From positions 6,944,001 to 7,008,000 of the forward strand of contig OZ241830.1 of assembly GCA_965202585.1 (NCBI GenBank): a DNA stretch of 64,000 nucleotides. Reading direction: 5' to 3'. The DNA is from Thalia democratica. Its lineage: Eukaryota. A program made the translations under genes and the position numbers. Below are positions 2,628 through 63,276 of this stretch, one piece after another. The notes beneath the pieces were generated by a model, which saw nothing but the letters and a program-made list of their open reading frames with translations, did not search any database and was not told the origin of the DNA. Each line of letters begins with the position of its first letter. Position 1 is the first letter of the stretch.

Positions 2628-3555
2628 ATGGCCGTTAGTTTTTCATCTAAAACAACACAAATTTTGTACCACAATAGATTCTGTGGACAAGAAAACTTTG
2701 ATGTAATTATTTCTGGAAGCACTGATGTGTTAGAACGAGAAAGTTTAAGGTTAAACTCGCGTAACTTAGAAATAATTGAGACTATATATCTTTCAAAGAA
2801 ACATTCATACAATGACTTAACAATTTGTGAAAGATCCTATGTTTGGACTGTCTGCTCAAAATTAGATGTTAAAGGCGAATCTGAAACACGATCTTCATTC
2901 AGGATTTGTAGTGATAAAACTGACCAATGGGTTAATGTAGTTCAAATACCTGACGGTAAAGGTAACTTTAGCGCTTGTTCGTTTATGAAAAACATTTACG
3001 TCTTTGGTGGATTTACTGAAGAAAGAGGTATAAAAAGTTGTTATAAATATGATACAAAAAGGAAAAAGTGGATATTTATAGCAAGTATGAATGAATGTAG
3101 GCAAAATGCAGCTTGTACAGTATTTGAAGGTAAAATTGTCTTGACTGGTGGTTACCATTGGTTTGGTGGAAGTAGGAGCTCAATGGAGGCATATGATTGT
3201 TACGAGAATAAATGGGACTTTCTGCCTCGCATGATTAACAAAAGATGTCTACATGGAGCTGTTTGTATGGGCAACAAGCTGTTTGTCATTGGTAGAGAAA
3301 AATGCTACTTGCGAGGTTTTTGATAGCAGCTCCATGAAGTTCACTAGTATCAAGCGGTTGGATCGCAATTGTTATTATTCTGTTTCCGCGGTCAGTGTTG
3401 GTGGCGAAATTTTGATTTTTGGTTCAGGGTATATGGCAGGAAAAGAAAATATTTGCACTTATAATGTTGACAAAAATGAATGGTACTGTAAAAGTAATCG
3501 TTTTAAGCAATTCAAAAGAGGTTTAGTATGTCATGCAAAGCTTTCTGTTATTTAA
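2628..3555 (+). pseudogene. K1: Kelch-only beta-propeller gene (N1-CA type) with a frameshift in blade 5
   Basis: ORFs 2628-3323 and 3253-3555 join into one paralog-length Kelch protein (NIYVFGG, KIVLTGG, KLFVIG, EILIFGS). GGTAGAGAAAAATGCTACT at 3291-3309 is 19 nt against 21 nt in paralogs. The shift lies at an A5 run, so a sequencing error is possible. Confidence 0.85.
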
Positions 3556-5049
3556 CAGTTTAAAATCTCAATGTTGCCTAATAATTATATTAAATATACA
3601 ATGAGTATTACGTTTTTTGATAACTTTATTTTATTTAAACTTGTTTTAGTTTTCAAAATTTAAAAAAATATGTTGCTGTTTGGTTCTGACTTTTTTTTTG
3701 TAGTTTAAATACTTAGTTTTCTATGGAAATTGTGGGTATTGTTTTTTTGTTTGTTTTTGTCTTTTCTCTTCAACAGTAAATAAAAAATCGAATTTGTTAA
3801 ATTATATAATTAAAATCTTTTCATAAGCAAAAAATAGTTTATTTTATATATTGCGAAGTACAAGTGTTACGGATAAAATTATTTTGATCATCGGTGAATT
3901 ATACGTTATCTATCTTTAAAATCTAGCATAAATATCAACAAAAACAATTTGATGAAAAAAAATGCAAATGTTTCTATTTAAAATTATAAAATAAATAGTA
4001 TAGTTTTTTTAAATATATTTATACTTTTAGTTTCTATGAAACAAGTTAAGAATTTAAATTATCTAAAAATGTGTAACGTAAGCGTACACTGTTTTAAGCA
4101 TTTAAAATTTAATGATAGCATATTGTAACATCTAATTTAAAACAAGAAGAAAAATTAATGTAAAATAATTAATGTCAAGTTAATAGCATTTTTTAACTGT
4201 TTTTTTATAATTTTTTCCGTTTAAATACATCTAAAAAGAATTTTTATGGTAAGTTGTTTTTATAAAGAATAAAACACAAGATGTTAAAATATTATTATAA
4301 TTTTCATGTATTACATTTTCATTTATATCCTTATTTAGGTCGACAGACTCAAAATGTACTAAAAAAAATAAAAATTACATGTGCTTTTAACATATTTTAC
4401 CAGAGATAAATGTTCTATCACTTTAATTTAATAAATTAATTAAATATAGGTTTGTTAATTAATTTTTAATCAAAAAAATTAATACGCTTTAAATTAAAAG
4501 TTAATGGTTAGCACCAAAAATGGTATTTTACCTGTTTAATAATTTTTCTGATTTTTTTTATAATTTTTAAAACTGGTATCTAAATCAAAGGTATAAACGA
4601 TATATCTTTTTCGTTAAAATGTAGAAACAACTAGTTTAACTTGATATAAACAGTTGTGTAGTAGTGAAGTTTATATTTACACGTTTACTATAGTTGCTGA
4701 AATTATAAAATTGAAGCTTTATTTTGTATTTAACTAAACACTTTACATGTGAATTGAAAAAACTTTCCATAAAAAATGCAAAAACAAGTTATTTAAAATA
4801 GGTGTACAAAAAAGTAAGTTTATTAAAGCATGCTAAATTTTGAAAAGCGTCTACTTAAATAAGTAATTATAAAAACTTTCATTATTAATTTTTGTTTTAA
4901 GAAAGTGCAGAATCGTATTTAGGCCGAAATGGCATTGAGTATAACGGTTGAACGGAAACTATCTTGAAACACAAAATGTTAAAGCTGCATTAAACCTTTC
5001 TAATTACCACCTGCAAAATTTCAATTGACTACTAAAGGTAAAATTAATT

Positions 5050-5176
5050 TGTTATAACAGAAATAGAAAGAGTTCTCACTTATAATGTTGACAAAAATGA
5101 ATGGTACTGTAAAAGTAATTGTTTTACGGAATTTGAAGGAGGTTTAGTATGTCTTGCAAAGCTTTCTGTTATTTAA
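5050..5176 (+). pseudogene. Orphan 3' fragment of a CA-type Kelch gene
   Basis: Encodes ERVLTYNVDKNEWYCKSNCFTEFEGGLVCLAKLSVI-stop and is followed by the normal CA 3' flank. There is no upstream coding part. Confidence 0.9.
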
Positions 5177-6765
5177 CAGTTTAAAATTTCCATGTTGCCT
5201 GATAATTTATTTATTGTACAACTAGTATTACGTTGTTTGATAATGATATTTATTTTAACTTGTTTTAGTTTTCAAAGTTTAAAAAAATCTCTTGCTGTTT
5301 CGTACCGACTTTTGTTTTGTAGTTTATATAGTTAGTTTTCTATGGAAATTGTAGATATTTTTGTTTTGTTTTTTTTTTGTCTTTTTACTTCAACAATAAA
5401 CAAAAAAATCGAGTTTGTTAGCTTATTTAATTAAAATCTTGTTATAACTAATCAAGAAATAGTTTTTTTGATATATTGAGTAGGAGTGTTACGGATAAAA
5501 ATAGTTTGATTATTGGTGAATTCTACGTTATTTATCTTTTAAATCTAGCATAAATTTCGACAAAAAAGATTTGAAGAAAAAAATTGCAAATGTGTCTATT
5601 AAAAACACAATTGTAATATACACAGTATAGTTGTATATATATATATATATATATACACTTGTAGTTTTTATGTGTAATGTAAGCCTACACTGTTTATAGT
5701 ATTTAAAATTTTATGATAGCATTTTGTAGCATATTATATAAAACATAAAGATAAAACTAAATTAAAATAATTAAAGTCAAGTTAATAGCATTTTTAAACT
5801 GTTTTTTAGATTTTTTTCATTTACATCTAAAAAGAATTTTTATGGTTAAGTTGTTATTAAGTAAATAACACAATATATTAAAATATTTAAAAAAATTTTA
5901 GGTATTACATTGTCATTTATATCCTTATTTAGGTCGACAGACTCAAAATGTACTAAAGAAAATAAAAATTACATGTGTTTTTGACATATATACCAGAGAT
6001 TAAAAGTTCTAACACTTTAATTTAATAAATTAATATATAGAATATAAAATATGCGTAAACTACATGTAATAAAAAAGTAAAATATAAATAGCTAATAATT
6101 TAAACAGCCTTAATAAAAGCTTTATTAAAGTTTTAAAATGGAATCAAATAAAGCAGATGAAGTGTTGCAAAAATTATAATAATTTAGTTAAATTTTTATA
6201 GTTAAAAAAGTTGCCCTTACTTTTAAGTAAGTATTTTAGATGCCGTACTGATTAAATTAATTCCCCAATTGTTTTTCTAGGGAAGTTTCAATATTTATGT
6301 TTACCTTAAATTAATGAAACACATTTTAATTTTCTTAATCTGTTTCAATAAGTTTTAGATGAAGAAGTTTATCTTTACCTATAAGTTGTATAAAATTGTT
6401 CTACATTTTATCTTTGAAATTATACATTGAGTATTAATGGTTAAAAATCCAAAGAACAACTAATTAGTTATAGCTAGTTCTACAAAACAACATATGAACG
6501 TTATGCTATAAGAAAAACACACTAATTTTCATAAGATTTTAATAATAACTGTTATAAGTAAATTATTAACAAAGTATAAACATGTACTTGTTCTTATTTA
6601 ATTTTTTAAATTAAAAAAACTGAAATGAAAACAAAAAGAACACAACAACAATATGCATTTAAAACTAAGTTTGTAATTTACAAAAAGTTTAAACGAAAAT
6701 CAGTACCTTACAAATTTTTTCAACATTTCGTATAAGTTATTAGACAACAAAATTGTTTTTTATTG

Positions 6766-7725
6766 TTAAATAACAGAAAGTTTTGAAAGACACTCAGTAT
6801 ATCCAAAATTAAAATAACTAACACCTTCAGATTTCCATTCATTTTCCTCAACATTATAAGTGAAAATTCGTTCTACATCTACTTTTTCACCTGAACAAAA
6901 TATTAAAATTTTGTCACAAATACTGACTGCAGAAACAAATTTGAAACAACTAAGTTCTAAATGCTTGATACTAGTGAACTTCATGGAGCTGCTATTAAAT
7001 ACCTCGCAAGTAGCATTTTCATTTCCACCAATCACAAACAGCTTGTTGCCCATACAAACTGCTCCGTGTAAATATCTTTTGTTGATCATACAGGGCAGAA
7101 AGTCCCATTTATTCTCGTAACAACCATATGCCTCTACTGAGTTTAAATCTACTTTACTTTTACCGTCGTAACCTCCAGTTAAGACAATTTTACCTTCGAA
7201 TACTGTACAAGCTGCATTTTGCCTAAACTTGTTCATGCTGGCTATGAAATTCCACTTACTCCTTTTTGTATCATATTTATAACAACTTTTTATAGCTCTT
7301 TTTTCAGCAAATCCACCAAAGACATAAATGTTTTTCATAAACGAACAAGCGCTAAAGTTGCTTCTATCATCAGGTGTTTGAGTTACATTAACCCATTGGT
7401 CAGTTTTATCAAGATAAATCCTGAAGGAATCAACAAGCTTGTATTTATCTTTTAAATTAGCTTTGCCGTTAATGGGGAATCTGGAGCAAACAACCCAAAC
7501 ATTGGATCTTTCACAAATTGTTAAGTCACTGTATGAATGTCTATCTGAATGATATATAGTCTCAATTATATCTAAGTTACGCGGGCTTATTCTTAATATT
7601 TTTCCTTCCTTAGAGTGTTTTAACACAGCAGTGCTTCCAGAAATGATTACATCAAAGTTTTCTTGTTCACAGAATCTATTCTGGTACAAAATTCGTTTTA
7701 TTTTAGATGAAAAACTAACAGCCAT
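6766..7725 (-). CDS. K2: Kelch-only six-bladed beta-propeller protein, 319 aa (N2-CB type)
   Basis: Intact ORF with Kelch GG/Y/W signatures (IYVFGG..CYKY..W, IVLTGG..VEAY..W, LFVIGG) and AAAATGG start context. Confidence 0.92.
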   Translation of the reverse strand: MAVSFSSKIKRILYQNRFCEQENFDVIISGSTAVLKHSKEGKILRISPRNLDIIETIYHSDRHSYSDLTICERSNVWVVCSRFPINGKANLKDKYKLVDSFRIYLDKTDQWVNVTQTPDDRSNFSACSFMKNIYVFGGFAEKRAIKSCYKYDTKRSKWNFIASMNKFRQNAACTVFEGKIVLTGGYDGKSKVDLNSVEAYGCYENKWDFLPCMINKRYLHGAVCMGNKLFVIGGNENATCEVFNSSSMKFTSIKHLELSCFKFVSAVSICDKILIFCSGEKVDVERIFTYNVEENEWKSEGVSYFNFGYTECLSKLSVI

Positions 7726-8982
7726 TTTAAACCTGTAACTTTGGTTTATTTAAATTTACAGTAACTCATGAGGCTTTTTATATTGGATTTAGTAGAATGA
7801 TTCAATTAAAAAAATATTTATTTTAGGTAGGATAATACACTTTTATGTTACTAGTGATATTTGGCTCTTTTTTAGAATGTAATGTATTTAAGTGTAAATA
7901 GTTTTAACTTATATGAGATATGAAAAATTGAATCTTAATTTTAACATTCTTAAAAAAATTTTAAACTTGTTAATTTACTTGTTTTGCAATTGCTTGATTA
8001 ATTTATAAAATTTGATAGTAGTTTAGTATACCAATATTAATTATACTTTGAAATAAACGAAATAAACTTATAATATAAGTTTTTAGTGTTGTCTAACATA
8101 CGTTAATATGTATTACGACTTTGTACAGCCTTAGCGTTGCAAATTTTTAAGCAGTAAACAAAATTATTTTAAACGTTTCATAAATAATTTCACCTAGTTC
8201 TCATATATAAACAAATACAGAGTAGAATATTTCAACTAAACAAATTATTTTAACTAAGTGTATTTTTAATTACTAAAACATTAAAAAACAAACAGTTGTA
8301 TAAAGTCTTTATTTTTTTAGCATAGTTATGTTTATTACTTGCAATATGAATAAACACAAAAATTCCTGTTATATAAGATTTTTTATACTGATTAAAACTA
8401 ACTATAGCTATTATGAGTTGAAATAGATAATTTTATGTTTATAGTATTGTTTAGATGTCTGCAAATGTAATGAAGTTAAGTTAACTGTTTTGGCTAATAT
8501 GAGTAGAAATGATAATTTTGAACCTTAAACTATAAACTTTAAAAGCATCTTGTTTCATTAATTAACTTAAAATCTGATTAATTTCTTCAAACACTTTCTT
8601 AAACTCTAAAATTGAATGTAACTTAAGAATATCAAGCAATTTTTCTTGTGCTTAAATTGTTATGGTTAAACATAATAGATTAATATGAATAAGCAAATTA
8701 AACAAAATACATATTATATAAAAAAAATCCCACAGATAGAAGTAAAAAATAGTTTCAGAAACAAAAATTATATGTTTGAATATTTAACCTGAACTTAAGT
8801 CTAATAAATAAGTTATGTTAAAAATATTAAGAATTAAAAAGAAACTGATGTGTAATTGGCCTCGTTTAGAAAATTTTAATAAAGTAAAATACACTAGTAT
8901 ATTACTAAATAAGCAACAATAAGGCAGTTATACAGCAGTCTACTGTGCTTTTTAAACTAATCGTTTATTTACGTAACTAGAA

Positions 8983-9680
8983 CGGGTAGCTGTCTAAATT
9001 GCACGAGGGTTCAAAACTGCACGAGTGCACAAAATTGCATGAAGATACTTTTGCACGAGGGGATAAAATTGCACAAAGATACTTTTGCACGAGCAGACAA
9101 CTTTTCACGGGTTAATTATATATATTTTTTTTATTAATTTAGTTTTTTTTTTCTATCACTGTTACCCCAAACCCTTATTCTCGGCCGGTAATTTTTTAAT
9201 TTCTTTTTGTTGACTTTTTTTATTTTAAATTTTTTATTTTGTTTTTTTAATTTTTTTTTTTTTAACTTTTTTTTATTCTACCACTGTTACCCCTAATCCT
9301 TACCCTCGGTCAGTAGCTTTTATTTTTTAATATTTTTTTTTAATTAATTATACTAGTTATTATTTTTTTTTTACTATCACTGTTACCCCTAAGCCTTACC
9401 CTCGGTCAGTCTTTCTTCTTTTTTTCATTAAAATATTTTCATATTTTATTTTTCTGTTTATTTTTATTTTTAATTTTTCTGTATTTTTTATATTTATTCT
9501 ATCTTTATTTTTTGACTCTCGTCAAAAAATGTAATTCGTGCAAATTTGACCCGTGGTGCAAAACCGTCATCGTGTAGTTTTGTTCCCTCGTGCAATTTTG
9601 TTCCCTGGTGCAATTTTGTTCCCTCGTGCAAATTAGTAACTTCGTGCAGTTTTGTCTTCGTGCAATTTAGACCCGCTCCG
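8983..9680. mobile_element. Non-autonomous DNA transposon (MITE), 698 bp, with 8-bp TSD AACTAGAA
   Basis: Imperfect TIRs CGG-N6/7-GTCTAAATTGCACGA, subterminal TGCACGA/TCGTGCA repeats, and AACTAGAA on both sides (8975-8982, 9681-9688). A paralogous empty site exists at 26102-26109. Confidence 0.85.
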
Positions 9681-11983
9681 AACTAGAACTTGGGTCGGCA
9701 GGTTTTTGTAGGTCGCAGTCAAATTAAAAAAAAAAATAGTTGATATGTTATTTTTTTATATTTCTCTTTTCAAACCCCGCAACGTAATCACTGAACGACA
9801 GAAAAGGCGTTTAAAAAATTTGGTCCAAAGACCCGGTGTACGAAAAAACCTTTTGCTTATCGAGTCGTACATCTGCATGAATTTTTTATACGTCTTGTCC
9901 ACTTTTTATAGTTATTTGTAATAAAGATCACTTTCATTTCTGCTTCTTTTCATCTTAATTTATGTGATTTTTAATCGCTCAAAAAATAATTAAATTTGAT
10001 TTTACTAAAATGTGTAATTAGTTCAATGTTTTTTACTGAAATAGTCTAGTGTTAAAATTTGCACTTTTGCCTAAAAATTGTTTACCATTTATTTTCTTGT
10101 GCTTTCTACTTTGTAAATTTTTAAATAATAGCATAACTTTCGGCTAAATACAACTTAAACAAAACCAAAAACTGCGAAAGTTCCTGTTAAAAAGTTGAAA
10201 CAAAATAAAATCGGTTTAAAAATTTTTTTTTATATCAATAAGATCTATAAACCTAGTTAAGTAATAATAATATATTATTAGCTTCTAATGTAAGCGTACA
10301 GTGTATTTATATTTCAAGTTTTGTGTAATAATTTTATATCGCCTAACATGTAATAAAAATAAAAAGTATTTTACTTTTACGATTTTATTTTTTATAAAAC
10401 AAGTTGGTGTCTGAAAATTAAGTTACTTATATAAAGTACTGTATATATTTCTTTCCCATATATATTTAGATAAAAAAGTACATGTCTGAGTTGGGCTCGT
10501 AAAAATGTTGTGAAGTAATTACCAACATAAACTAAAGTACTAAGTAAGTTAATATTTGTATTACATTGTCTTTTTAATATATTCTGAGTTTGCACTTACT
10601 TAAATTGTATTAAATGAAAAAATACGATTACATGTGTTTTCAAATATTTTAACCTTACGAGAGTTACAATTTGTTAAAAATTTTTAAAGGCGCACTTCTA
10701 ATAGCACCTTTAGTTTATTTTAATACCTCAAGAAACTAGCAACGATACAAACTAAAAAACTGTAACTTATTAATAATAGCCTACAACAACTTTGGTTCTA
10801 CAACAACAAAAAATACTAATTTTTAATTGAATGAATTAGCATACAAATAAAAAATATATTATAATATTTACAGCTCCTATTTTTCAGTGTTGTCTTTGGC
10901 TTCCTCGCTATAATAATGAATAAATTAATAAATACATTACCGTTCAGTTCAAAAAATTTTGAACATCTCAACATTCGGACTTTCTTCGAAATTAGCATTA
11001 TTTTAATAATAAATTTATTTAATGTATGTACATTCTTTGTATTCATATTTCAAACTTTTATCTAATTGTTCAACTTTGAAATTTTAAATTTATTAATTTT
11101 TTAAAAATTAGCTATAAAAGTTAATTTTAAATGATGTTTTTTGAGAAAATTAAAAAACAAAATTAAAATACAATAAAAAGTTGTATAAGTAGTTTAATAC
11201 AATAAATTTTCTTACTTAAAACGTATGTTTAGATTAAAAAACCAATCTGTAATCTGTATTAAAAAAAGCTGGTGTAAACTATTTTTTAATTTATATAAAA
11301 CAGCGTGAATAATTTTAATGTACAAGAACACACCTTAAGTTTAATTTTTCTATATTTTTGTAACTTCCTACCTACTGGTAAACAATTACATGGCTCTTAT
11401 TATTTATATTGTTTGATAGTTCTGTTAAACAAACAAAAACAATTTACTTGTTGTTTATATTTTGGCTTGAGAGATTATAGGTATGGAAGTATCAAGGTAG
11501 AGTGAGTAACTAAGTTTTTTGTGTTTATTTCTGAAACAGTTATAATTGTCAGATACTAATCTGTTGTTAGATTTTAAATGAAATGAGTTAAAACTATAAA
11601 AATCATTTACTATTAACTCTGTTTAAATTTTTTGTTTTGTTTTTAGTTTTAGAGTTAATAGTCTTACAATAATTTAAAGTATAGAAAAATTTCACGGTAA
11701 CCTAATGAACTAGTTAATACTATAAAGAGGTATTACAGAAATCAAAAATCTTTAGAAAGTTATATATTGGACATATATATATATATATTTCTAATGTTGT
11801 TATTAAAAGCAACTACAAAAAATATTCTATTTTTGAACAAAAACAATTGAGCTATTACACTAAAAAAATTATAACAAGCCCTTGGTACAAACATCTTACC
11901 TACTCTTTAGTTAATAAATAAGAATTTTCTAATTTTAACAAAAAAAATTAACTATAATTAGCTCAAAGTTTATCTATATAAAG

Positions 11984-12232
11984 CAGGGTTTTCCAAAGTG
12001 GGCCAAATGGCCCCCTTGGGGGCCATGACAGATACTTAGGGGGCTACGAGCAGCAAAGGGGTAAGAGTGGGGCCATGAGGTCATAACTTGAAATTTACAC
12101 TAGATATTTTTGAAATGCAGATGAAGAGCAAAAAAAAAGTGTTAGGTGTTTTTTATGATAGTTTATGAGTTATCTTGTTGAAGGGGGCCATGGCTTTTTT
12201 AACTTCTTTAAAGGGGGCCATGTGAAAAAAAG
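11984..12232 (+). mobile_element. Truncated hAT-type MITE (one TIR only)
   Basis: Starts CAGGGTTTTCCAAAGTGGGCC and carries repeated GGGGGCC subterminal motifs. The second TIR is missing, and the element joins directly to the Kelch upstream sequence AAACGTTCAAAAC. Confidence 0.75.
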
Positions 12233-12702
12233 TGAAACGTTCAAAACAATGAATTAAACTACTGCTTGATAATATACAATGCTAAGACTATAAAACGGCG
12301 TAATACATATTAATATATAATAGACAACACTAAAAAACTTATATTAAAGGTTTTTAAAATTTAATTAAAAATAGAATTAGTATTTTTAACAAAACTAGTA
12401 TAAGATTTTAAAAATAAATTAAGCAATTGCAAAACATCAACAACATTACAAGTAAATTAGTCAGTTTAAAAATCTGATGAGTGTGTTCAAATTAAGATTT
12501 AATTTTTAAAACTCAAACTGCCAAACCTCTTTGCACCTAAGTATTTTATTTATAAAAAGTCAAATATCACTAGTAACTTAAAAGTATACAATTCTTACAA
12601 ATAATTAATTAAAGTTTTTGATTGAATAGTTCTACAAAGTCAAATATTTCGTAACCACACAAGTCACTGTAAATTCAAATATACCAAAGTTGCAGGTTTA
12701 AA

Positions 12703-13635
12703 ATGGCAGTTAGTTCTTCATCTAAAGCAACACGAATTTTGTACCAGAATAGATTTTGTGAACAAGAAAACTTTGATGTTATTATTTCTGGAAGCACTAA
12801 TGTGTTAGAACGAGAAAGTTTAAGGTTAAACTCGCGTAACTTTGATAAAATTGAAACAATATATAATTCAAAGACACATTCGGAAAGTGACATAACGATT
12901 TGTGAAAGATCCAATGTTTGGACTGTTTGCTCAAGATTAGAAGCTAAAGGCGTATCTGAAACACGATCTTCATTCAGGATTTATATTGATAAAACTGACC
13001 AATGGGTTAATGTAGTTCAAGTACCTGACGGTAGAGGTAACTTTAGCGCTTGTTCATTTATGAAAAACATTTATGTCTTTGGTGGATTTACTAAAAAAGA
13101 TGCTTTAATAAGTTGTTATAAATATGATACAAAAAGGAGTAGGTGGATATTTATAGCCAGTATGAATAAGTTTAGGCAAAATGCAGCTTGTACAGTATTC
13201 GAAGGTAAAATTGTCTTAACTGGAGGTTACGACGGTAAAAATAAAGTAGATTTAAACTCAGTAGAGGCATATGATTGTTACGAGAATAAATGGGACTTTC
13301 TGCCTTGTATGATTAACAAAAGATGTCTACATGGGGCTGTTTGTATGGGCAACAAGCTGTTTGTGATTGGTGGAGATTACAGTGGTACTTGCGAGGTATT
13401 TGATAGCAGCTCCATGAAGTTCACTAGTATAAAGCAGTTAGAGCGCGATTGTTATTGTTCTGTTTCCGCGGTCAGTGTTGGTGGTAAAATTTTGGTTTTT
13501 GGTTCTTTTGGTTTGTTAGGAGAAGAAAATATTTGCACTTATAATGTTGACAAAAATGAATGGTACTGTAAAAGTAATTGTTTTACTAAATTCGAAGATG
13601 GTTTAGTATGTCTTTCAAAACTTTCTGTTATTTAA
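12703..13635 (+). CDS. K3: Kelch-only beta-propeller protein, 310 aa (N1-CA type)
   Basis: Intact ORF with six Kelch-like blades, the first two degenerate, and a C-terminal closing strand LVCLSKL. Confidence 0.92.
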   Translation: MAVSSSSKATRILYQNRFCEQENFDVIISGSTNVLERESLRLNSRNFDKIETIYNSKTHSESDITICERSNVWTVCSRLEAKGVSETRSSFRIYIDKTDQWVNVVQVPDGRGNFSACSFMKNIYVFGGFTKKDALISCYKYDTKRSRWIFIASMNKFRQNAACTVFEGKIVLTGGYDGKNKVDLNSVEAYDCYENKWDFLPCMINKRCLHGAVCMGNKLFVIGGDYSGTCEVFDSSSMKFTSIKQLERDCYCSVSAVSVGGKILVFGSFGLLGEENICTYNVDKNEWYCKSNCFTKFEDGLVCLSKLSVI

Positions 13636-43015: not shown

Positions 43016-43187
43016 TTAAATAACAGAAAGCTTTGCAAGACATACTAAACCTCCTTCGAATTGCTTAAAACGATTACTTTTGACACCAATCTATAATAAA
43101 AACACCCTCTCCACCAATGACAAACAGCTTGTTGCCCATACAAACAGCTCCATGTAGAAATATTTTGTTGATCATGCGAGGCAGAAA
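43016..43187 (-). pseudogene. K7: internally deleted CA-type Kelch remnant
   Basis: About 43107-43187 matches the LPRMIN..LHGAVCMGNKLFVIGGE segment and 43016-43080 the KSNRFKQFEGGLVCLAKLSVI-stop segment. The intervening blade-6 part is missing, and the CA 3' flank follows in inverted orientation. Confidence 0.85.
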
Positions 43188-48488: not shown

Positions 48489-49415
48489 TTAAATAACAGA
48501 GAGTTTTGAAAGACACTCAGTATATCCAAAATAAAAATAACTAATACCTTCAGATTTCCATTCATTTTTGTCAACATTATAAGTAAAAATTCTTTCTACT
48601 CCTACTTTTTCACCTGAACAAAATGTTAAAATTTTAACACAAATACAGACTGCAGAAACATATTTGAAACAACTTTGATCTAAATGCTTGATACTAGTGA
48701 ACTTCATGGAACTGCTATCAAATACCTCGCAAGTAGCATTTTCCTCTCCACCAATGACAAACAGCTTGTTGCCCATACAAACTGCTCCATGTCGACATCT
48801 TTTGTTTATCATGCGAGGCAGAAAGTCCCATTTATTCTCGTAACAATCATATGCCTCTACTGAGCTCAAACTTATATCATTATCACCGTCGTAACCACCA
48901 GTCAAGACTATTTTACCTTTGAATACTGTACAACCTGCAAATTGCCTATATCTATTCATTTTAGTTATAACTTTCCACTTGCTCCTTTTTGTATCATATT
49001 TATAACAACATTTGAAGAAACAGTTAGTAAATCCACCAAAGACATAAATGTTTTTCATAAATGAACAAGCGCTAAAGTTACCTCTATTATCAGGTGTTTG
49101 AACTACATTAATCCATTGGGCAGTTTTATCAATATAAATCCTGAATGAAGATCGTGTTTCAGATACGCCTATAGCTTCTAATCTTGAGCAAACAGTCCAA
49201 ACATTGGATCTTTCACAAATCGTTATGTCACTGTCCGAATGTGTCTTTGAATTGTATATTGTTTCAGTTTTATCAAAGTTACGCGAGTTTAACCTTAAAC
49301 TTTCTCGTTCTAACACATCAGTGCTTCCAGAAATAATAACATCAAAGTTTTCTTGTTCACAAAATCTATTCTGGTACAAAATTTGTGTTGTTTTAGATGA
49401 AGAACTAACTGCCAT
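48489..49415 (-). CDS. K9: Kelch-only protein, 308 aa (N1-CB chimera)
   Basis: Intact ORF with a K3-like N-terminus and upstream region and a K2-like C-terminus and downstream region. Confidence 0.92.
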   Translation of the reverse strand: MAVSSSSKTTQILYQNRFCEQENFDVIISGSTDVLERESLRLNSRNFDKTETIYNSKTHSDSDITICERSNVWTVCSRLEAIGVSETRSSFRIYIDKTAQWINVVQTPDNRGNFSACSFMKNIYVFGGFTNCFFKCCYKYDTKRSKWKVITKMNRYRQFAGCTVFKGKIVLTGGYDGDNDISLSSVEAYDCYENKWDFLPRMINKRCRHGAVCMGNKLFVIGGEENATCEVFDSSSMKFTSIKHLDQSCFKYVSAVCICVKILTFCSGEKVGVERIFTYNVDKNEWKSEGISYFYFGYTECLSKLSVI

Positions 49416-49884
49416 TTTGAACCTGCAACTTTGGTAATTTGAATTTACAGTAACTTGTGTGGTTACGAAATATACGATTTTGTAGAACTATTCAATCAAA
49501 AACTTTAACTAATTATTTATAAGAATTGTATACTTTTATGTTACTAGTTATATTTGATTTTTTATAGATAAAATACTTAGGTGCAAATAGGTTTGGCAAT
49601 ATGAGTTTTAAAAATTGAATCTTAATTTGAACACACTCATCAGATTTTTAAACTGACTAATTTACTTGTAATGTTGTTGATGTTTTGCAATTGCTTAATT
49701 AATTTTTAAAATCTTAAACTAGTTTTGTTAAAAATACTAATTATATTTTTAATTAAATTTTGAAAACTTTTAATATAAGTTTTTAAGTATTGTCTATTAT
49801 ATGTTAATATGTTTTACGCCGTTTTATAGTCTTAGCATTGTTTATTATCAAGCAGTAGTTTAATTCATTGTTTTGAACGTTTCA

Positions 49885-50132
49885 CTTTTTTTCACATGGC
49901 CCCTTTTAAAGAAGTTAAAAAGCCATGGCCCCCTTCAAAAAGATAACTCATAAACTATCATAAAAAACACCTAACACTTTTTTTTTGCTCTTCATCTGCA
50001 TTTCAAAAATATCTAGTGTAAATTTCAAGTTATGACCTCATGGCCCCACTTTTACCCCTTTGCTGCTCGTAGCCCCCTAAGTATCTGTCATGGCCCCCAA
50101 GGGGGCCACTTGGCCCACTTTGGAAAACCCTG
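49885..50132 (-). mobile_element. Truncated hAT-type MITE, inverted duplicate of 11984-12232
   Basis: Ends TTTGGAAAACCCTG and has the same truncation junction with the Kelch upstream region. Confidence 0.8.
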
Positions 50133-50338
50133 CTTTATATAGATAAAATTTGAACTAATTATAGTTAATTTTTTTTTGTTAAAGTTAGAAAATTCTTATT
50201 TATTAACTAAAGAGTAGGTAAGATGTTTGTACCAAGGGCTTGTTAGAATTTTTTTAGTGTAATAGCTCAATTGTTTTTGTTCAAAAATAGAGTATTTTCT
50301 GTAGTTGCTTTTAATAACAACATTAGAAATTTATATAT

Positions 50339-50692
50339 AATAAATAATAATAAACTAGCAAAAATTCATATAACTTCAGTGACTCACTGAAGTTATATGA
50401 ATTTTTGCTAGTTTATTGTCTGTTGGTAGATTAGTTTTTGCACAAGCCGTTTTGTACGATTTTTGATAGTTTCAAAATTACGTCATAATCTATTTATGCA
50501 AAAATTTTCTTACCTTCATTAGTGATTTTGTTTTGTGCTTTATTTTAAACTTGTTTTGAAGCTGATGAGTGAGTAATCACGAAACTCGAGTTCTTTGAGT
50601 TTTGCATCTTTAAATAAACCTTTTTATTAATGAAGCCCTCAAGGTGGGCTCAGTGTGAAAAATTTAATTTATTAAGTTAAATAACTTAATTC
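50339..50692 (+). mobile_element. Penelope-like element terminal (pLTR-type) fragment inserted in a (TA)n tract
   Basis: Absent from the paralogous site near 11775. It contains a hammerhead core and a perfect 5' inverted repeat, both typical of PLE ends. Assignment is by structure only. Confidence 0.65.
50555..50599 (+). ncRNA. Minimal type I hammerhead ribozyme motif
   Basis: TTTGAAG-CTGATGA-GTGA(GTAA)TCAC-GAA-ACTCGAGT-T-CTTTGAG: intact CUGAUGA/GAAA core, 4-bp stem II, palindromic stem III (ACTCGAGT), GUU cleavage triplet and a wobble-rich stem I. Confidence 0.72.
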
Positions 50693-52344
50693 TATATATA
50701 TATATGTCTAATATATAACTTTCTAAAGTTTTTTGATTTCTGTAATACCTTTTTATAGTATTAACTAGTTAATTAGCTTACCGTGAAAATTTTCTATACT
50801 TTAAATTATTGTAAGACTATTAACTCTAAAACTAAAAACAAAACAAAAAATTTAAACAGAGTTAATAGTAAATGATATTCATAGTTTTAACTCATTTCAT
50901 TCAAAATCTAACAACAGATTAGTATCTGACAATTATGACTGTTTCAGAAATAAACACATAAAAGCTTAGTTACTCACTCTACCTTGAGACTTCCATACCT
51001 ATAATCTCTCAAGCCAAAATATAAACAACAAGTAAATTGTTTTTGTTTGTTTAACAGAACTATCAAACAATATAAATAATAAGAGCCATGTAATTGTTTA
51101 CCAGTAGGTAGGAAGTTATAAAAATATAGAAAAATTAAATTTAAGGTGTGTTCTTGTACATTAAAATTATTCACGCTGTTTTATATAAATTAAAAGATAG
51201 TTTACACCAGCTTTTTTTAATACAGATTAAAGATTGGTTTTTTAATCTAAACATACGTTTTAAGTTAGAAAGTTTATTGTATCAAACTACTTATATAACT
51301 TTTTTATTGTATTTTAATTTTGTTTTTTAGTTTTCTAGAAAAAAACTTTATATAAAAATAACTTTTAGAGCTGTCTTTGAAAAGAGTTATTAAATTTGAA
51401 ATGTCAAAGTTGAATAGTTAGCTATAATATTATTAAAATAATGCTTATTTCAAAGAAAATCCTAATATTGAGGTGTTCAGAAATTTTGGATCTAAACGGT
51501 AATGTGGATAAATTTATTCATTTTTATAGCGTAGAAGCCAAAGACAACACTGAAAAATAGGAGCTGTAAATATTAACGTAATATATTTTTAATTTGTATG
51601 CTAATTCATTCAATTACAGATAAACTTTTTTTTTCTTGTTATTTTAGAACCAAAGTTGTTGTAGGCTGTTATTAATAATTTACAGTTTTTTAGTTTGTAT
51701 CGTTGCTAGTTTCTTGATGCATTAAAATAAACTAAATGTGCTATTAGAAGAGTGCCTTTTAAAACATTTAACAAATTGTATCTCTTGTAAAGTTAAAATA
51801 TTTGAAAACACATGTAATCTTATTATTTTCATTTAATAAAATTTGAGTAAGTGCAAACTCAGAATAGATTAAAAAGACAATGTAACAAATATAAACTTAC
51901 CCAGTACTTTAGTGCATTTGTTAGTAATTACTTTACTACCTTTTTTATGAGCCCAACTCAGACATGTACTTTTTTTATCTAAATATATATGGGAAAGAAA
52001 TATATACAGTACTTTATATAAGTAACTTAAATTTTAGACACCAACTTGTTTTATAAAAAATAAAATTGTAAATGTAAAATAGTTTTTATTTTTATTACAT
52101 ATTAGGCGATATAATATTATTACAAAAACCTTGATTTAAAAAACAGTGTACGCTTACATTAAAAGCTAACTATATATTATTACTTCTTAACTAGGTTTAT
52201 AAATCTTATAAATATAAAAGAATTTTTAAAAACCGATTTTATTTTGTTTCAATCTTTAACAGGAACTTTCGCAGTTTTTGGTTTTGTTTAATTTGTATTT
52301 AGCTAAAAGTTATGCTAGTATTTAAAAATTTACAAACTAGAAAT

Positions 52345-52842
52345 TAAATAAATTAATAAAAAATAAACAGAAAAATGAAAAATAAAATATTTATGAAAAA
52401 AAAAAGAAAGACTGATCGAGGGTAAGTATTAGGGGTAACATTGATAGTAAAGAACAAATAATAAAAAAAATTATTTATGATAAAAAACATATTAAAAATT
52501 AAAAGCTACCGACTGAGGGTAATGGTTAGGGGTAATAGTGGTAGTAAAAAAAAAGTTTTAAAAAAATTAAAAAAACTAAAACAAAAAATATAAGTTGAAA
52601 AAAAAACAAAAAAAAAAACTTACCGACCGAGGGTAAGGGTTAGGGGAAAAAGTGATAGAAAAAAATATATACATATAAAATTAATATAAAAACTTGAAAA
52701 AAACTATAACTAACTCGTGCAAAATTGTCTACTCGTGCAAAAGTATCTTCATGCAATTTTAAGCACCCGTGCCAAAGTATCTTCATGCAATTTCAGGAAC
52801 TCGTGCAATTTTGTACCCTTGTGCAATTTAGACAGCTACCCG
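52345..52842. mobile_element. Partial copy of the 698-bp MITE (one end deleted)
   Basis: Ends GACAGCTACCCG-TTCTAGTT as at 34942. The other end was removed by a deletion of roughly 600 bp relative to 9480-10095. Confidence 0.8.
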
Positions 52843-54072
52843 TTCTAGTTACGTAAATAAACAATTAGTTTAAAAAGCACAGTAGACTGCTGTATAACTG
52901 CCTAAAAGTTTCTCATTTAATAATATACTAGTGCATTTTACTTTATTATAATTCAAACAACGCAAATTACACATCAGTGTCTTTTTAATTCTTTATATTT
53001 TTAGTATAACTTTTTTATTAGACTTAAGTTCAGGTTAAATTTATTTCAAATATTAGACTTTTTATTTCTAAAACAAGTTTTATTTTTTTATGTAGAATTT
53101 TTTTTAATTAATATTTTGTTAAACCTATTTTCACGTGTTAAACCATAAGAATTTCAGCATTAGAAAAACTGTTTAATAATAAACTAACTTTGTTGTTCTT
53201 AACTTACTTTCAGTTTTAAACTTTAATAAAGTGATTGTAGAAGTTAATCAGATTTCAAATTAATTAGTCAAACAATATCTTTTTTGATTGTATAGTTAAA
53301 GGTTCAAATTAATTATTTCTACTCATATAAGCCAAAACAGTTAACTTAACTACACTGAATTTATAGACAGCCATATATACTTCTACTTACAATAGCTATA
53401 GTTAGATATAATGAAATAGAAAATCTAATACAACAGGAAAGGAAATCAATTGTTTTGCTTATTCATATTACAATCAATAAACATAACTATGCTAAAAAGA
53501 TATACAGCTGTCTGTTTATAAATGTTTTAGTAAGTAAAAATACACTTAGTCAAAACAATTTGTTTAACTAAGAAATTTTAATTTATATATGACAATTAGG
53601 TCAACTTAATTACATTAAAGTTAAAGATACTCACAGTTGAACGTTCGAAACGATGAATTAAATTAACAATTTTGTTTACTTCTTAGTAATACATTATGCT
53701 AAGGCTGTACAACATCGTAATACGTGTTAACATATAATAGACAACAATTAAAAACTTTTCTTTTTTTTCAAAGCAGATTTAATATTGTTATATTAAACTA
53801 ATATAAAGTTTTATAAATCAATTAAGCAATTGAAAAACAAGTGATTTAGTCTGTTGAAAATTTGTTGAGAGTGTTTAAATTCATATAAACAGAACTATTT
53901 AGACTTAACTACATTACATTTATAAAGAAACAAAAAACACAAGTAACATAAAATTATATAATTTTAGCTAAAATAAATGAATAAAGTTATTGGTTGAATC
54001 ATTTTACAAATCGAATATAAAAAACTACAAAAGTTATTGTAAATTCAAGTATAACAAAGTTACAGGTTTGAA

Positions 54073-55032
54073 ATGGCAGTTAATTTTTCATCTAAAACAA
54101 CACGAATTTTGTACCAGAATAGATTTTGTGGACAAGAAAACTTTGATGTTATTTTTTCTGGAAGCACTGCTGTGTTAAAACACTCTGAGGAACGAAAAAT
54201 ATTAAGAATAAGCTCGCGTAATTTAGAAAAAATTGAAACTATATATCATTCAAAGAAACGTTCATACAGTGACACAACAATTTGTGAAAGATCCAATGTT
54301 TGGGTTGTATGCTCCAGATTACCCGTTCGCAGCAAAACTCATCTAAAAGATAATTACAAGCTTGTTGATTCGTTCAGGATTTATCTTGATAAAACTGACC
54401 AATGGATTAACGTAATTCAAACACCTGATGATAGAAGAAGCTTTAGCGCTTGTTCGTTTATGAAAAACATTTATGTCTTTGGTGGATTTACTGACTCACC
54501 ACTTAAACGTTGTTATAAATATGATACAAAAAGGAGTAAGTGGAAATATATAGCCAAAATGAATAAATATAGACATAATGCAGCTTGTACAGTATTCAAA
54601 GGTAAAATTGTCTTGACTGGTGGTTACGATGGTAAAAATAAAGTAGATTTAAACTCAGTAGAGGCACATGATTGTTACGAGAATAAATGGGATTTTCTGC
54701 CTCGCATGATCAACAAAAGATGTCTACATGGAGCAGTTTGTATGGGCAACAAGCTGTTTGTCATTGGTGGAGAGGAAAATGCTACTTGCGAGGTATTTGA
54801 TAGCAGTTCCATAAAGTTCACTAGTATCAAGCAGTTAGATCGCGATTGTTATTATTCTGTTTCCGCGGTCAGTGTTGGTGGTAAAATTTTGATTTTTGGT
54901 TCAGGGTTTAGAGTAGGAGAAGAAAGAATTCGTTCTTATAATGTTGACAAAAATGAATGGTACTATAAAAGTAATTGTTTTACGGAATTCGAAGGAGGTT
55001 TAGTATGTCTTGCAAAGCTTTCTGTTATTTAA
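54073..55032 (+). CDS. K10: Kelch-only protein, 319 aa (N2-CA chimera)
   Basis: Intact ORF with a K2/K5-like N-terminus and K2-like upstream region, and a CA-type C-terminus. Confidence 0.92.
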   Translation: MAVNFSSKTTRILYQNRFCGQENFDVIFSGSTAVLKHSEERKILRISSRNLEKIETIYHSKKRSYSDTTICERSNVWVVCSRLPVRSKTHLKDNYKLVDSFRIYLDKTDQWINVIQTPDDRRSFSACSFMKNIYVFGGFTDSPLKRCYKYDTKRSKWKYIAKMNKYRHNAACTVFKGKIVLTGGYDGKNKVDLNSVEAHDCYENKWDFLPRMINKRCLHGAVCMGNKLFVIGGEENATCEVFDSSSIKFTSIKQLDRDCYYSVSAVSVGGKILIFGSGFRVGEERIRSYNVDKNEWYYKSNCFTEFEGGLVCLAKLSVI

Positions 55033-58216: not shown

Positions 58217-59460
58217 TTACTAGTGATTTTTGTTTCTTTATAAATGTAATGTAATTAAGTCTAAATAATTTTGGCTTATATGAATTTAAACACTCTCAAC
58301 AAATTTTCAACTGACTAAATCACTTGTTTTCCAATTGCTTAACTGATTTATAAAATTTTATATTAGTTTTGTATACCAATATTAATTCTACTTAGAAACA
58401 AATTTAGAAAAGTTTTAAAATAATTTTTTAAGTGATGTACATTGTATGTTAATATGTATTACGATGTTGTACACCCAAATCATTATATATCATTAAACTG
58501 TAAACGAAATTATTAAGCTAATACACTGTTTTAAACGTTTAACTGTATCATATCTTTGACTTTGACATAAATATGTACACCTATTTGTTATATATAAATT
58601 AATATGTAGTAGAATTTCTTAGCTAAACAAATTATTAAGACTAAGTGTATTTTTATAACATTTAACAACATACAGCTGTATACCTTTTTTGGCATGGTTA
58701 TGTTTATTGATTGTAATATGAATAAGCAGAACAGATGATTTCAGTTCTTATTGAATTAGATTTTTTACTGATTAGAACTTATTACAGCTGTTTTAATTAG
58801 AATTGTATACTTTTTTATTAACAGTAAATATGACTGTCTATTAATGTAATAAACATCTGATTTCCTTTTTTACATTATAATCAAGATCAGATATAATAAA
58901 CACCTCAAACCTTGATACATTATTCTAAGTCAGTTTGTTTTAAGTGAAACAAGAAGTTTTGAAACCTTTAAATGAGTGATATTTTTTAATGGATAAATAA
59001 AAATCAAACTTAAATTTTTTTTAATCTAATAAAAAAATTAAAAATATAGTAAACGTTTTATAAACTTTGAGGATTGAAGTAAAACAAAAGTAGAAAATAG
59101 TTTATAAGTCTTTGAAAAAACAGATCGTATCAAAATGTATTGTTTCTTGGTATCAATTTATTCAATCTCAACAACTTTTTTATAAAAATATATTTAAATT
59201 ACTGATGTTTGTTTTTGGTTATAACAAATGCAATAAATACTAACCATGTATTTTAATAATAAATAAGAGAAATTAAGGTTAATTAAACTATTAAGTTGTA
59301 AACTAAATATCAAATGTAATTGCTAAACCATGAATTAGGTTATTAATTGACCAAGAATAAACTGGTTTGTGTAAATAAAAGATCATTTGAAAATATCATT
59401 ATGATGCAATGCAAACTACAAACAATATTGATTTTTTAACTGGCCGGCCATGCTCGGTTA
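58217..59460 (-). promoter_or_regulatory. Orphan Kelch upstream region (- strand gene lost)
   Basis: Collinear with the K5 upstream region (about 23070-24180). It breaks at the TTACTAGTGA motif about 110 nt before the expected ATG, directly against the GC-rich fragment. Confidence 0.8.
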
Positions 59461-60096
59461 CTTATCTTAAATATACTTTTTAATTTTACTTTAAATGTGG
59501 TTTGTCGATAATGTTGTACTTACAAACCTAAATTATTTTGTCTTTCAGCTTCATAACTGCCAAATTTGTATGAGAAAATTGCCATACAATTACTCAAGCG
59601 TGAAATTTTAAGTTAAAACTAATAAAAATTTACTTCTCAGAACTCTTAAATTTGGTATTTTTGCAATCCTTGCTATTTTGGTAAGTTTGGTAATAAAAAA
59701 TAGTTTAACAAATAAGCATAAGACAGGCAGCAAAGTTTCCTAACAAACAAAAATTAACATTTTTGTAAATATTCTTTTTCTGCGTTAGCTGTTTTTCAGC
59801 CAAAATCAACGTCGCGAGCTTTTTTTTATTTTATCAACTGGTTGGCTGCATTTGTTGATGGTATAAGCAGCAGTAATACTTATTTTCTTCAGCAATAGTT
59901 AAAAGTTTTAAATCTCAAATAATATTAATTCTATCCAAATAAATTATAGAAACTTTTTATTTTTACTGTAACAAATTTGTAAGTTTTACATTTTTTTCTT
60001 GGTATTTTTATTTTTTGAATATTACAACAGAAACTAAACAATTTTTTACTTAATGCTTATAAATATTTATATTTCTTTAGGTTTAGATTTAATTTT

Positions 60097-60345: not shown

Positions 60346-62343
60346 TTGTCCATTTTTGTTCTAATTATCTATTTTATTTTTTATGATTAATTTGATTAGT
60401 TTTATATTGATTGCCTTTTTAGTCTACTCTTCTTTTGTTTGATTAATTAATTTTTGTGAATATTAATTTTGTTTTGACAAGAAAGTTAGTTAAATTTTGA
60501 AAGCATTGCTCAATAAACCGTTAAAATGAAAAAAAAAACTTTGTTAAGCAATTAATTGGTACATAGATAAAAGGATTTTTTAGATTTTTTTGAACCGGTT
60601 CAGTAATATTGACATAAAGTATGTACTAGTAAAGTATATGGTTTTTTATTTGAACCATTTTATTTCATATTTTCATGTTCTATAAAGGCTTTTTTGAAAC
60701 ACAAACTTAAAGAAACTAGCCAGGATTGAAAAACCTATCATATTTAAGAGTTCTGAAAAGTAAATTTTTATTAGTTTTAACTTAAAATTTCACGCTTGAG
60801 TAATTGTATGGCGATTTTCTCATACAAATATGGCAGTTATGAAGCTAAAAGATAAAATAAAACGAAAGTTTGTAAGTACCACATTAACAACAAACTGCAT
60901 TAATATCGATAATTATCTTTATGACAAGTAACCAAGCATTACCGGCCGGTTAAACACTCTCACATATTGTATGTAGTTTACATTGCATAATGATAACTTT
61001 TTTAAATTTACGCCTGAAAAACAGCTGTTATCTTTTATGTAGACAAAACAGTTTAATCTAGGTCAATTAATAATCTTATTCATGTTTTGGCAATTAGATT
61101 TAATATTTAGTTTACAATGTGACATTTATTAACTATAGTTTTCTCTTATTTATTATTAATATACATGGATAGTGTTTATTGCTTTTTATTAAAAACAGAT
61201 AATAAACATCAGTAATTTTAAAATATTTTTATAAACTAGTAGTTTAACTTAAATAAACTGTACTTACCAGAAAATACAAAGGTGATAAAATTTTGATACG
61301 ATCAGTCATTCAAAGACTTAAAAATTGTTTTCTACTTTGATTTTACTTCAATCCTCAAAATTAATGAAACGTTAAATATATTTACAATGGTTTAATTAGA
61401 TTAAAAAAAAGGTTTTAGTATGACTTTTATTTATCCATTGAAGAAATTCAGACTGATTAAGAACTATTATGTAAGTTTTAAGGTTTATATCATATCTGAT
61501 CTTGATTATGTTGTAACAAAAGAAATCAAATGTTTATTACATTAATAGACAGTCATATTTTACTATTAATATAAAAGAATTTTATTCTACTTACAACAGC
61601 TGTAATTAGTTGTAATCAGTAAAAAATACTAATACAATAAGAACTGAAATCATCTGTTCTGCTTAATCATATTACAATCAATAAACATAACTACGCTAAA
61701 AAGATATAGACTTTATACAGCTGTTTGTTTTTCAATGTTTTAGTAATTAAAAATACACTTAGTTGAAATAAATTGTTTAATCAATACATTCTAATGTATA
61801 TTTGTTTATTTATGACAACAAGGTGAACATATTTACATCGAAATTAAAGAATGGTTAAGATATGATAGAGTTGAACGTTCAAAACAATGAATTAAACTAC
61901 TGCTTAATAATATACAATGCTAAGGCTATACAACGGTGTAATACATATTAACATATAATAGACAACAATTAAAAACTTAAATTAAAGGTTTTCAAATTCA
62001 TTTCAAAAAAAAAATTGGAATTGTTATACAAAACCAGTAGAAATTTATAAATTAATAAAGCGATTGCAAAACATCAACAACATTACAAGTAATATAGTCA
62101 GTTTAAAAAATTTGTTGAGAGTGTTAAAATTAAGATTTAATTTTTAAAACTTATAATTTTTAAAACTATTTGCACTTAAGTATTTCATTTATAACAATTC
62201 AAATATCACTAGTAACATAAAAGTATACAATTCTAGCTAAAATAATTAATTAAAGTTTTTGATTGAATAGCTCTACAAAATCCAATATTTCATAACCACA
62301 CAAGTTACTGTAAATTCAAATACACCAAATTTACAGGTTTAAA

Positions 62344-63276
62344 ATGGCTGTTAGTTTTTCATCTAAAACAACACAAATTTTGTACCAGAATAGATTTTGT
62401 GAACAAGAAAACTTTGATGTTATTATTTCTGGAATCACTGATGTGTTAGAACGAGAAAGTTTAAGGTTAAACTTGCGTAAGTTTGATAAAACTGAAACAA
62501 TATACAATTCAAAGACACATTCGGAAAGTGACATAACGATTTGTGAAAGATCCAATGTTTGGACTGTTTGCTCAAGATTAGATGTTAAAGGCGTATCTGA
62601 AACACGACCCTCTTTCAGGATTCATATTGATAAAACTGACCAATGGGTTAATGTAGTTCAAACACATGATGGTAGAGGTAACTTTAGCGCTTGTTCATTT
62701 ATGAAAAACATTTATGTCTTTGGTGGATATTTTGAACAAGAAGCTATAAAAAGTTGTTATAAATATGATACAAAAAGGAGTAAGTGGAATTTTATAGCAA
62801 TTATGAATGAATGGAGGCAAGTTGCAGCTTGTACAGTATTCGAAGGTAAAATTGTCTTGACTGGTGGTTATGACGGTGAAAATAGAGTATATTTAAACTC
62901 AGTAGAGGCATATGATTGTTACGAGAATAAATGGAACTCTCTGCCTCGCATGATCAACAAAAGATGTCGACATGGAGCAGTTTGTATGGGCAACAAGCTG
63001 TTTGTCATTGGTGGAAAGAAAAATGCTACTTGCGAGGTATTTGATAGCAGTTCCATGAAGTTCACTAGTATCAAGCATTTAGAGCGCGATTGTTATTATT
63101 CTGTTTCCGCGGTCAGTGTTGGTGGCAAAATTTTGATTTTTGGTTCAGGGTATATAGCAGGAAAAGAAAGAGTTCGCACTTATAATGCTGATAAAAATGA
63201 ATGGTACTGTAAAAGTAATTGTTTTACGGAATTCGAAGTAGGTTTAGTATGTCTTGCAAAGCTTTCTGTTATTTAA
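62344..63276 (+). CDS. K11: Kelch-only beta-propeller protein, 310 aa (N1-CA type)
   Basis: Intact ORF, close to K3 in the N-terminal half. Confidence 0.92.
   Translation: MAVSFSSKTTQILYQNRFCEQENFDVIISGITDVLERESLRLNLRKFDKTETIYNSKTHSESDITICERSNVWTVCSRLDVKGVSETRPSFRIHIDKTDQWVNVVQTHDGRGNFSACSFMKNIYVFGGYFEQEAIKSCYKYDTKRSKWNFIAIMNEWRQVAACTVFEGKIVLTGGYDGENRVYLNSVEAYDCYENKWNSLPRMINKRCRHGAVCMGNKLFVIGGKKNATCEVFDSSSMKFTSIKHLERDCYYSVSAVSVGGKILIFGSGYIAGKERVRTYNADKNEWYCKSNCFTEFEVGLVCLAKLSVI

Follow-up and report, generated by a model that had tools for sequence, protein, structure and literature searches.

A strand-locked 3' module and exchanged 5' halves in an inverted tandem array of Kelch genes from Thalia democratica

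The window considered here is a 64,000-nucleotide (nt) stretch of the Thalia democratica genome (assembly GCA_965202585.1, contig OZ241830.1, forward strand; C6:6944001-7008000, with unprefixed positions counted from its first letter). The genome measures 801 Mb at ~25% GC, and tblastn together with an open reading frame (ORF) listing places eleven loci, K1 to K11, of one intronless ~310-aa Kelch gene family in this window. The locus raises the question of how genes on opposite strands can share promoters and 5' halves while each strand keeps its own kind of 3' end. An earlier note on this DNA had proposed that 3' ends stay anchored while 5' halves and promoters move, through repeated inversion or conversion between inverted partners; the present comparison supports this, with one reciprocal inversion plus conversion patches, the upstream sequence classes being found on both strands and the downstream flanks being class-specific. 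The best explanation, and a probable one, is descent from an A/B gene pair combined with crossover and conversion in inverted arms through non-allelic homologous recombination (NAHR); as part of this explanation the window is likely to be the middle of a ~270-kb birth-and-death Kelch array of about 25 members.

Modules, strands and the boundary at codon 247

Alignment of the window loci distinguishes three N-types (N1, N2 and N3) by two indels, and two C-types (CA and CB) by the 3' module, with assignments that agree with those of the earlier note:

K1, 2628..3555, + strand: N1-CA pseudogene, frameshift near 3293-3300, inside copy 2 of a 49.4-kb duplication
K2, 6766..7725, - strand: intact N2-CB; CB module at ~6766-6958, B-type downstream flank at ~6032-6765
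K3, 12703..13635, + strand: intact N1-CA; CA module from ~13443 (nt 740, codon 247)
K4, 18986..19920, - strand: N3-CB pseudogene, frameshift near 19147
K5, 22029..22934, - strand: N2-CB with a 1-nt insertion near the 3' end; near twin of a - strand copy at C6:6880715
K6, 32302..33243, + strand: intact N3-CA; a chimera whose 3' part is A-type
K7 remnant, 41832..43187, - strand: CA 3' module fragments and A-type downstream flank, in inverted orientation
K8, 45969..46910, + strand: N1-CA pseudogene with two TAA stops; convergent with K9 across a 1.6-kb spacer
K9, 48489..49415, - strand: intact N1-CB; reciprocal chimera with K10
K10, 54073..55032, + strand: intact N2-CA; reciprocal chimera with K9
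K11, 62344..63276, + strand: intact N1-CA; A-type downstream flank at 63277-63885

The ten loci previously counted as full-length genes are rightly located and typed, but four of them are pseudogenes, K1, K4 and K5 by frameshift and K8 by its two stops; cluster-wide, 12 of 21 non-redundant copies are intact. All six N x C combinations occur (N1CA in K1, K3, K8 and K11; N1CB in K9; N2CA in K10; N2CB in K2 and K5; N3CA in K6; N3CB in K4), and in that sense the matrix is complete as claimed; its filling is far from random, however, with N1 joined to CA at 9:1 and N2 to CB at 6:2.

Within the window K1, K3, K6, K8, K10 and K11, all on the + strand, end in CA, and K2, K4, K5 and K9, all on the - strand, end in CB. 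Alignments of neighbouring DNA and genome-wide DNA searches specific to each module extend the rule over the cluster, with 15 unique CA modules on the + strand and nine unique CB modules on the - strand. The exception that had been named at the outset, CA on the - strand in the K7 remnant, is real, and its A-type flank is inverted with it; a second is a 5'-truncated CB pseudogene on the + strand at the right cluster edge (C6:7086768-7088279). Both exceptions are truncated pseudogenes, and every non-truncated copy obeys the rule. A Fisher test of strand against C-type on unique modules gives p = 3e-5, a value in which duplication kinship overstates independence; K1, lying in a near-identical duplication copy, cannot be counted separately from its twin. 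For K7, an origin by simple flipping of a convergent core was considered and rejected, as no B-type flank lies beside it. The strand lock by itself is not diagnostic of inversion; it is best explained by descent, as the outcome of same-orientation tandem duplication of an old convergent A/B pair.

The anatomy of the copies is asymmetric about the gene. Each class has downstream flanks strictly of its own, with 190-1450 bp common to + copies and 350-1450 bp to - copies; between the classes downstream homology ends within ~150 bp of the stop codon. Upstream, at least 400-700 bp are common to all copies, and the longer classes (X, Y and common) are each found on both strands. In a sliding comparison, differentiation between + and - copies stays at ~0-0.2 from -700 to nt 725, reaches ~0.5 from nt ~740 (codon 247) and continues at that level into the flank; mean identity between + and - copies drops from 87% (nt 300-740) to 69% (nt 740-933). 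In the structural model of K3, codon 247 is the junction of blades 5 and 6 of the Kelch propeller, so the C module corresponds to blade 6 plus the closing strand; the N-type indels fall in loops of blades 1 and 2.

The boundary is not absolute. The CB gene R5 (- strand, C6:7062373-7063323) is A-type up to nt ~810 and B-type beyond, a shift of ~70 nt, which shows that exchange can penetrate blade 6. Exchange end-points are scattered, at ~nt 290-450 in K9, K10, K6 and K4 and at ~nt 810 in R5. A 96-nt block before the boundary has 36 genome-wide matches, all in this subfamily, and is not a family-wide signal.

Exchange between the strands

Trees were built for four segments: the promoter (-650 to -1), codons 1-110, codons 110-242 and the 3' segment (nt 740 to the end). 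Separate segment trees had been set beforehand as the test of mixing, and they are incongruent; the 3' segment splits + from - copies at 100/100, and the promoter, codons 1-110 and codons 110-242 trees each need four to five strand changes; for the promoter and for codons 1-110, well-supported branches make at least four of these unavoidable. Strand monophyly is rejected by the approximately unbiased (AU) test with p-AU of 1e-46 for the promoter, 8e-8 for codons 1-110 and 0.003 for codons 110-242. A permutation test of the pairwise homoplasy index (PHI) gives z = -24 on 278 informative coding sites, and 68 of 108 opposite-strand pairs have significantly long identical runs; these are pairwise p-values, GENECONV-like global ones being dominated by near-identical direct duplicates.

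A dispersed copy on chromosome 5 dates the two parts of the gene relative to one another: it nests inside class A in the tree of the 3' segment (100/99), but in that of codons 1-110 the 21 cluster copies all group to its exclusion (99/98). The A and B 3' ends had therefore already split before that dispersal, while homogenisation of the 5' 740 nt within the cluster came after it. Concerted evolution with an escaping region classically leaves this pattern.

The movement of the 5' parts can be followed where two units of the array are compared, K2-K3 and K9-K10, with the following features between and beside the genes:

CA remnant, 5053..5931, + strand: piece of a CA 3' module (5060-5173) and A-type downstream flank
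K2-K3 head-to-head spacer, 7726..12702: block X at 7726-9476 on the K2 promoter side, block Y at 10103-12702 on the K3 promoter side
K9-K10 head-to-head spacer, 49416..54072: blocks Y' (49416-52343) and X' (52350-54072), the K2-K3 spacer inverted

The outer parts of the two units are collinear, 5053-8180 matching 46787-49884 and 15823-17243 matching 56005-57397; the CA remnant is the positional counterpart of the 3' end of K8 in the K8-K9 unit. Between these outer parts the whole 4.6-5 kb spacer and both 5' gene parts are inverted. K3 with 2.6 kb of upstream sequence is 89-91% identical to K9 with its upstream sequence, and K2 with 1.75 kb upstream is 78% identical to K10 with its own. The genes themselves are spliced accordingly: K9 is 95-97% identical to K3 from -700 to +300 and 91% identical to K2 from nt 740 onward, and the 5' 300 nt of K10 are 90% identical to K2 while its 3' module is A-type and 93% identical to that of K11. 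Inverted homologous arms, formed by the promoter and codons 1-246 of the - and + genes, are present at both breakpoints, as NAHR requires. The alignments thus demonstrate a reciprocal inversion that relates K2-K3 to K9-K10 and leaves reciprocal chimeras; a single crossover between the inverted arms of a head-to-head pair accounts for N1CB and N2CA together, and both products, K9 and K10, remain intact ORFs. The K9-K10 stretch is tiled at 95-100% identity by contigs from three samples, which come from three studies; those over window 48700-54699 measure 100-450 bp, contain no informative strand-changing joint and are too short to bear on inversion polymorphism.

Smaller exchanges overlie the inversion. 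Central tracts on a 70-90 nt scale make physical neighbours each other's nearest relatives, K2/K3 at nt 465-590 and K9/K10 at nt 620-710, which argues for conversion between physical neighbours and means that the inversion breakpoints have been blurred by later patches. K4 (-), K6 (+) and a further cluster copy, R3 (-), are 93-98% identical over a 5' part (to ~nt 440) and over a promoter stretch longer than 1.2-1.4 kb; with three copies carrying one 5' part, copying as well as exchange is required. Exchanged tracts are 2-7% divergent, and exact matches between opposite strands extend to 87-137 nt at most, so the exchange events are old.

Within block Y' of the K9-K10 spacer lies a 361-bp insertion (50332-50692) that belongs to a very high-copy element; summed contig depth there rises to ~355,000, compared to ~100-300 in most adjoining bins. 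The insertion is skipped by contigs of two public runs and is absent from the homologous region upstream of K3; it appears to be polymorphic.

Origin of the arrangement

The explanation favoured here would begin with an old convergent pair, A on the + strand with the CA end and B on the - strand with the CB end, amplified by direct, same-orientation tandem duplication. Under direct duplication of a convergent pair the 3' module (blade 6, closing strand and its own flank) keeps its strand by descent. The A/B homology left from ~0.5-1.5 kb upstream to codon 246 would then form inverted-repeat arms around every head-to-head spacer; an occasional crossover in these arms would invert the spacer and swap promoters and 5' gene halves between strands, and short non-crossover gene conversion within the arms would be the more frequent event. 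As the 3' modules are ~69% identical and have unrelated flanks, exchange tracts end there and the modules keep diverging; the outcome would be promoters and blades 1-5 that are homogenised and reshuffled across both classes. About three events could suffice for the 3 x 2 matrix: the K9/K10 inversion, the copy Lb then being derived from a K10-like copy; the formation of N3 by exchange between the two indels; and the transfer of N3 across strands. The comparison shows the module anatomy, the boundary, the conflict between segment trees, one reciprocal inversion and concerted evolution of the 5' part; the order of these events, the relative share of crossover and conversion, and any functional value of the shuffling are what we infer from this scheme.

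Several points weigh against this explanation. The halves of the inversion have diverged unequally (89-91% on the K3/K9 side versus 78% on the K2/K10 side), and the history must therefore include later events beyond one clean inversion; either arrangement, K2-K3 or K9-K10, may be the ancestral one. The lock would be broken by crossovers within convergent pairs, since these would turn the 3' modules round, and non-truncated copies show none; the missing flips would be unexplained if crossovers were frequent, although with ~1-3 inferred crossovers their absence is not statistically surprising, and it fits conversion as the commoner outcome. The right third of the cluster enters the comparison through +/-1.5-kb loci and match coordinates only.

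The closest competitor dispenses with inversion altogether: non-reciprocal gene conversion would be the only process, and the lock would be automatic since tracts cannot pass the non-homologous 3' end. Short patchy tracts are indeed common, the neighbours K2/K3 and K9/K10 are nearest relatives in just such tracts, and the 5' part common to K4, K6 and R3 needs copying; conversion alone also accounts for the lack of flipped 3' modules in intact genes. It is nevertheless considered unlikely, as the orientation of an entire 4.6-5 kb spacer differs between the two units, class-specific far-upstream sequence has moved with the 5' halves, and Y' and X' abut at 52343/52350 with no residue of an original spacer; two independent multi-kb conversions meeting exactly at that point are far less parsimonious than one inversion.

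A stronger version of the inversion scheme, in which the head-to-head arms act as a recurrent and possibly polymorphic flip-flop that re-pairs a promoter and blades 1-5 with two selected blade-6 modules, is thought quite improbable. If it were true, the array would be a selected diversity generator for a recognition family, working in a eukaryotic germline without a dedicated recombinase.

Further still from the evidence is a programmed, shufflon-like system in which 5' cassettes are joined to two fixed 3' ends, somatically or frequently in the germline. The modular N x C structure and inversions bounded by inverted repeats within coding sequence resemble bacterial invertible specificity loci, and variable residues lie in loops, with ratios of nonsynonymous to synonymous substitution (dN/dS) of 0.45-0.85, about 1 in blade 6. 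End-points that vary over ~nt 290-810, with no fixed crossover site, speak against such a system, as do the promoter and full ORF of each copy and the age of the events, with tracts 2-7% diverged. No short conserved crossover sites at fixed positions were found among the exchange end-points, and no recombinase ORF occurs among the unspliced window ORFs of at least 100 aa, which comprise the Kelch genes and one orphan without a Pfam match, although a spliced gene could escape this search; an Rfam scan of the window found no family. Such a system is regarded as very unlikely. That collapsed or mis-joined paralogues merely mimic the chimeras and the inversion can be dismissed as extremely improbable: the 49.4-kb duplication at the left window edge, with its single mismatch over 49,383 bp, could have been created in assembly, but the units compared differ by 9-30%, too much for an assembler to confuse them, the chimeric junctions are confined to ~1 kb and the inverted segment as a whole to ~6.5 kb, and the contigs from three studies noted above cover K9-K10. 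Against these alternatives, descent of an A/B pair with crossover and conversion in inverted arms is retained.

The encoded propeller, the cluster and known systems

The intronless Kelch-only genes of the window encode proteins of 308 to 319 aa by ORF listing and Pfam. In K3 and K2, Pfam detects Kelch repeats of PF01344 (Kelch_1, E = 2e-27), with PF24681 above its cut-off. The AlphaFold2 model of K3 (predicted local distance difference test, pLDDT, 85.9; predicted template modelling score, pTM, 0.86) contains six four-strand groups and a C-terminal strand at residues 299-308; the predicted fold is a six-blade propeller closed by that strand. The best PDB matches of the model by Foldseek are the Kelch domains of KLHL17, KLHL3, KLHL2, KLHL12 and KEAP1, at template modelling (TM) scores of 0.74-0.86. 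The likeness to the KLHL and KEAP1 Kelch domains thus extends to the six-blade propeller and to the Kelch_1 repeats detected in the window genes; the difference from KLHL adaptors of BTB-BACK-Kelch architecture is that the window genes encode neither BTB nor BACK, and that the family is hugely expanded in this genome.

Neither a BTB nor a BACK domain is matched by Pfam in K3 or K2, and tblastn with BACK-Kelch relatives, of which the propeller part alone matched, finds no BACK-coding exon in the window; longer BACK-Kelch relatives align with the window genes from the relatives' residue ~142 onward, and their N-terminal part is unmatched anywhere in the window. Residues 1-25 of every copy (for example, window 12703-12777) form an almost invariant N-terminal motif in which Y14, R17 and C19 are invariant in 71 family members; the motif is the counterpart of the linker that follows BACK in the longer relatives, and it is kept despite the loss of BACK.

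In pairwise comparisons of intact copies, dN/dS comes to 0.68 (codons 1-110), 0.45 (codons 110-245) and 0.85 (C module; ~0.8-1.2 within classes), figures that are confounded by recombination; variable positions cluster in loops of the K3 model. These features fit a fast-evolving recognition family that may be under relaxed or diversifying selection.

The ~270-kb cluster at C6 6.83-7.09 Mb is formed by the closest subfamily, of which small groups also occur on C4, C5 and one unplaced contig; the wider family comprises 5302 first-look candidates in the genome. Very large arrays of same-length Kelch-only genes, 36-43% identical, are found at C1 13.6-14.9, C1 18.7-22.2 and C5 77.3-79.2 Mb. Relatives with 63-69% identity occur on marine metagenome contigs, one of them from a TARA sample; the exact K9 protein had no match in public assemblies, and a literature search turned up no paper on this Kelch family or locus. 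Module shuffling is hereby documented in a marine animal genome, in a BTB-less, very large, fast-turnover set of Kelch genes that may serve as a diversified recognition family.

Two promoter blocks of the window stand without a gene:

Solo X-type promoter block, 34485..36101, + strand: 90% identical to the K10 upstream region, without coding sequence behind it
Solo Z (common) class promoter block, 58217..59689, - strand: Kelch coding sequence replaced by a GC-rich island at 57880-58217

Both are remnants of lost array members. The GC-rich island (~330 bp, window 57823-58217, - strand) sits amid 25% GC where a Kelch coding sequence would be expected, and it carries a 118-aa ORF; neither island nor ORF has a Pfam or Rfam match. 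One 74% identical copy of the island lies at C10:27461529, and short fragments lie at C6:7073910 and C6:7089378.

To the left, the cluster contains the direct tandem duplication of 49,383 bp (C6:6849302-6898684 and 6898688-6948070; one mismatch, 99.998% identical), copy 2 of which ends at window 4070 and includes K1; its junction lies inside a Kelch gene, at nt ~425 of the copy at C6:6848878. Either the duplication happened very recently or the assembly created it. A repeat of 2.5-6.8 kb, probably a recently active mobile element, is packed in several copies (97-99.8% identity) between the Kelch genes of C6:6857747-6877593 and of the duplicate of that stretch.

Taken as a whole, the locus cleanly illustrates how NAHR and gene conversion, which are known processes, act on an inverted tandem array, and it calls for no new mechanism. 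It is an unusually legible case: the sharp boundary between homogenised and escaping sequence coincides with a blade boundary, and a reciprocal intragenic inversion has left both chimeric genes intact. It also carries a caution, in that phylogenies of such families depend on the segment chosen and a strand-to-type rule can arise by descent alone.

Three groups of known systems provide comparisons. Concerted evolution with a conversion boundary is known from the human fetal globin genes HBG1/HBG2 and the inverted Amy duplicates of Drosophila; as there, the promoter and the 5' and central coding sequence of the Kelch genes are homogenised, a bounded 3' part and its flank are older, and segment trees are incongruent, whereas here the array has ~25 members in alternating orientation, with exchange across strands and at least one crossover that inverted a spacer. 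NAHR inversions between inverted paralogous repeats are known from IDS/IDS2, the F8 int22h repeats and the FLNA-EMD flip, and arm-to-arm conversion from Y palindromes; inverted arms, inverted intervening DNA, reciprocal chimeras and arm-to-arm conversion are common to IDS/IDS2, F8 int22h, FLNA-EMD and the Kelch array. In the latter, however, both breakpoints fall in intact coding paralogues and both products are intact ORFs, and the events, fixed in the evolution of a gene family, are neither disease alleles nor known polymorphisms. Bacterial shufflons and phase-variable hsdS inversion loci, such as the six-allele type I specificity switches, likewise join N- and C-terminal recognition modules combinatorially by inversion at inverted repeats in coding sequence; the Kelch array differs from these in having no recombinase found, no fixed crossover site and no single expression site with silent cassettes, and in lying in a eukaryotic germline, where exchanged sequences have accumulated several percent of divergence after the events.

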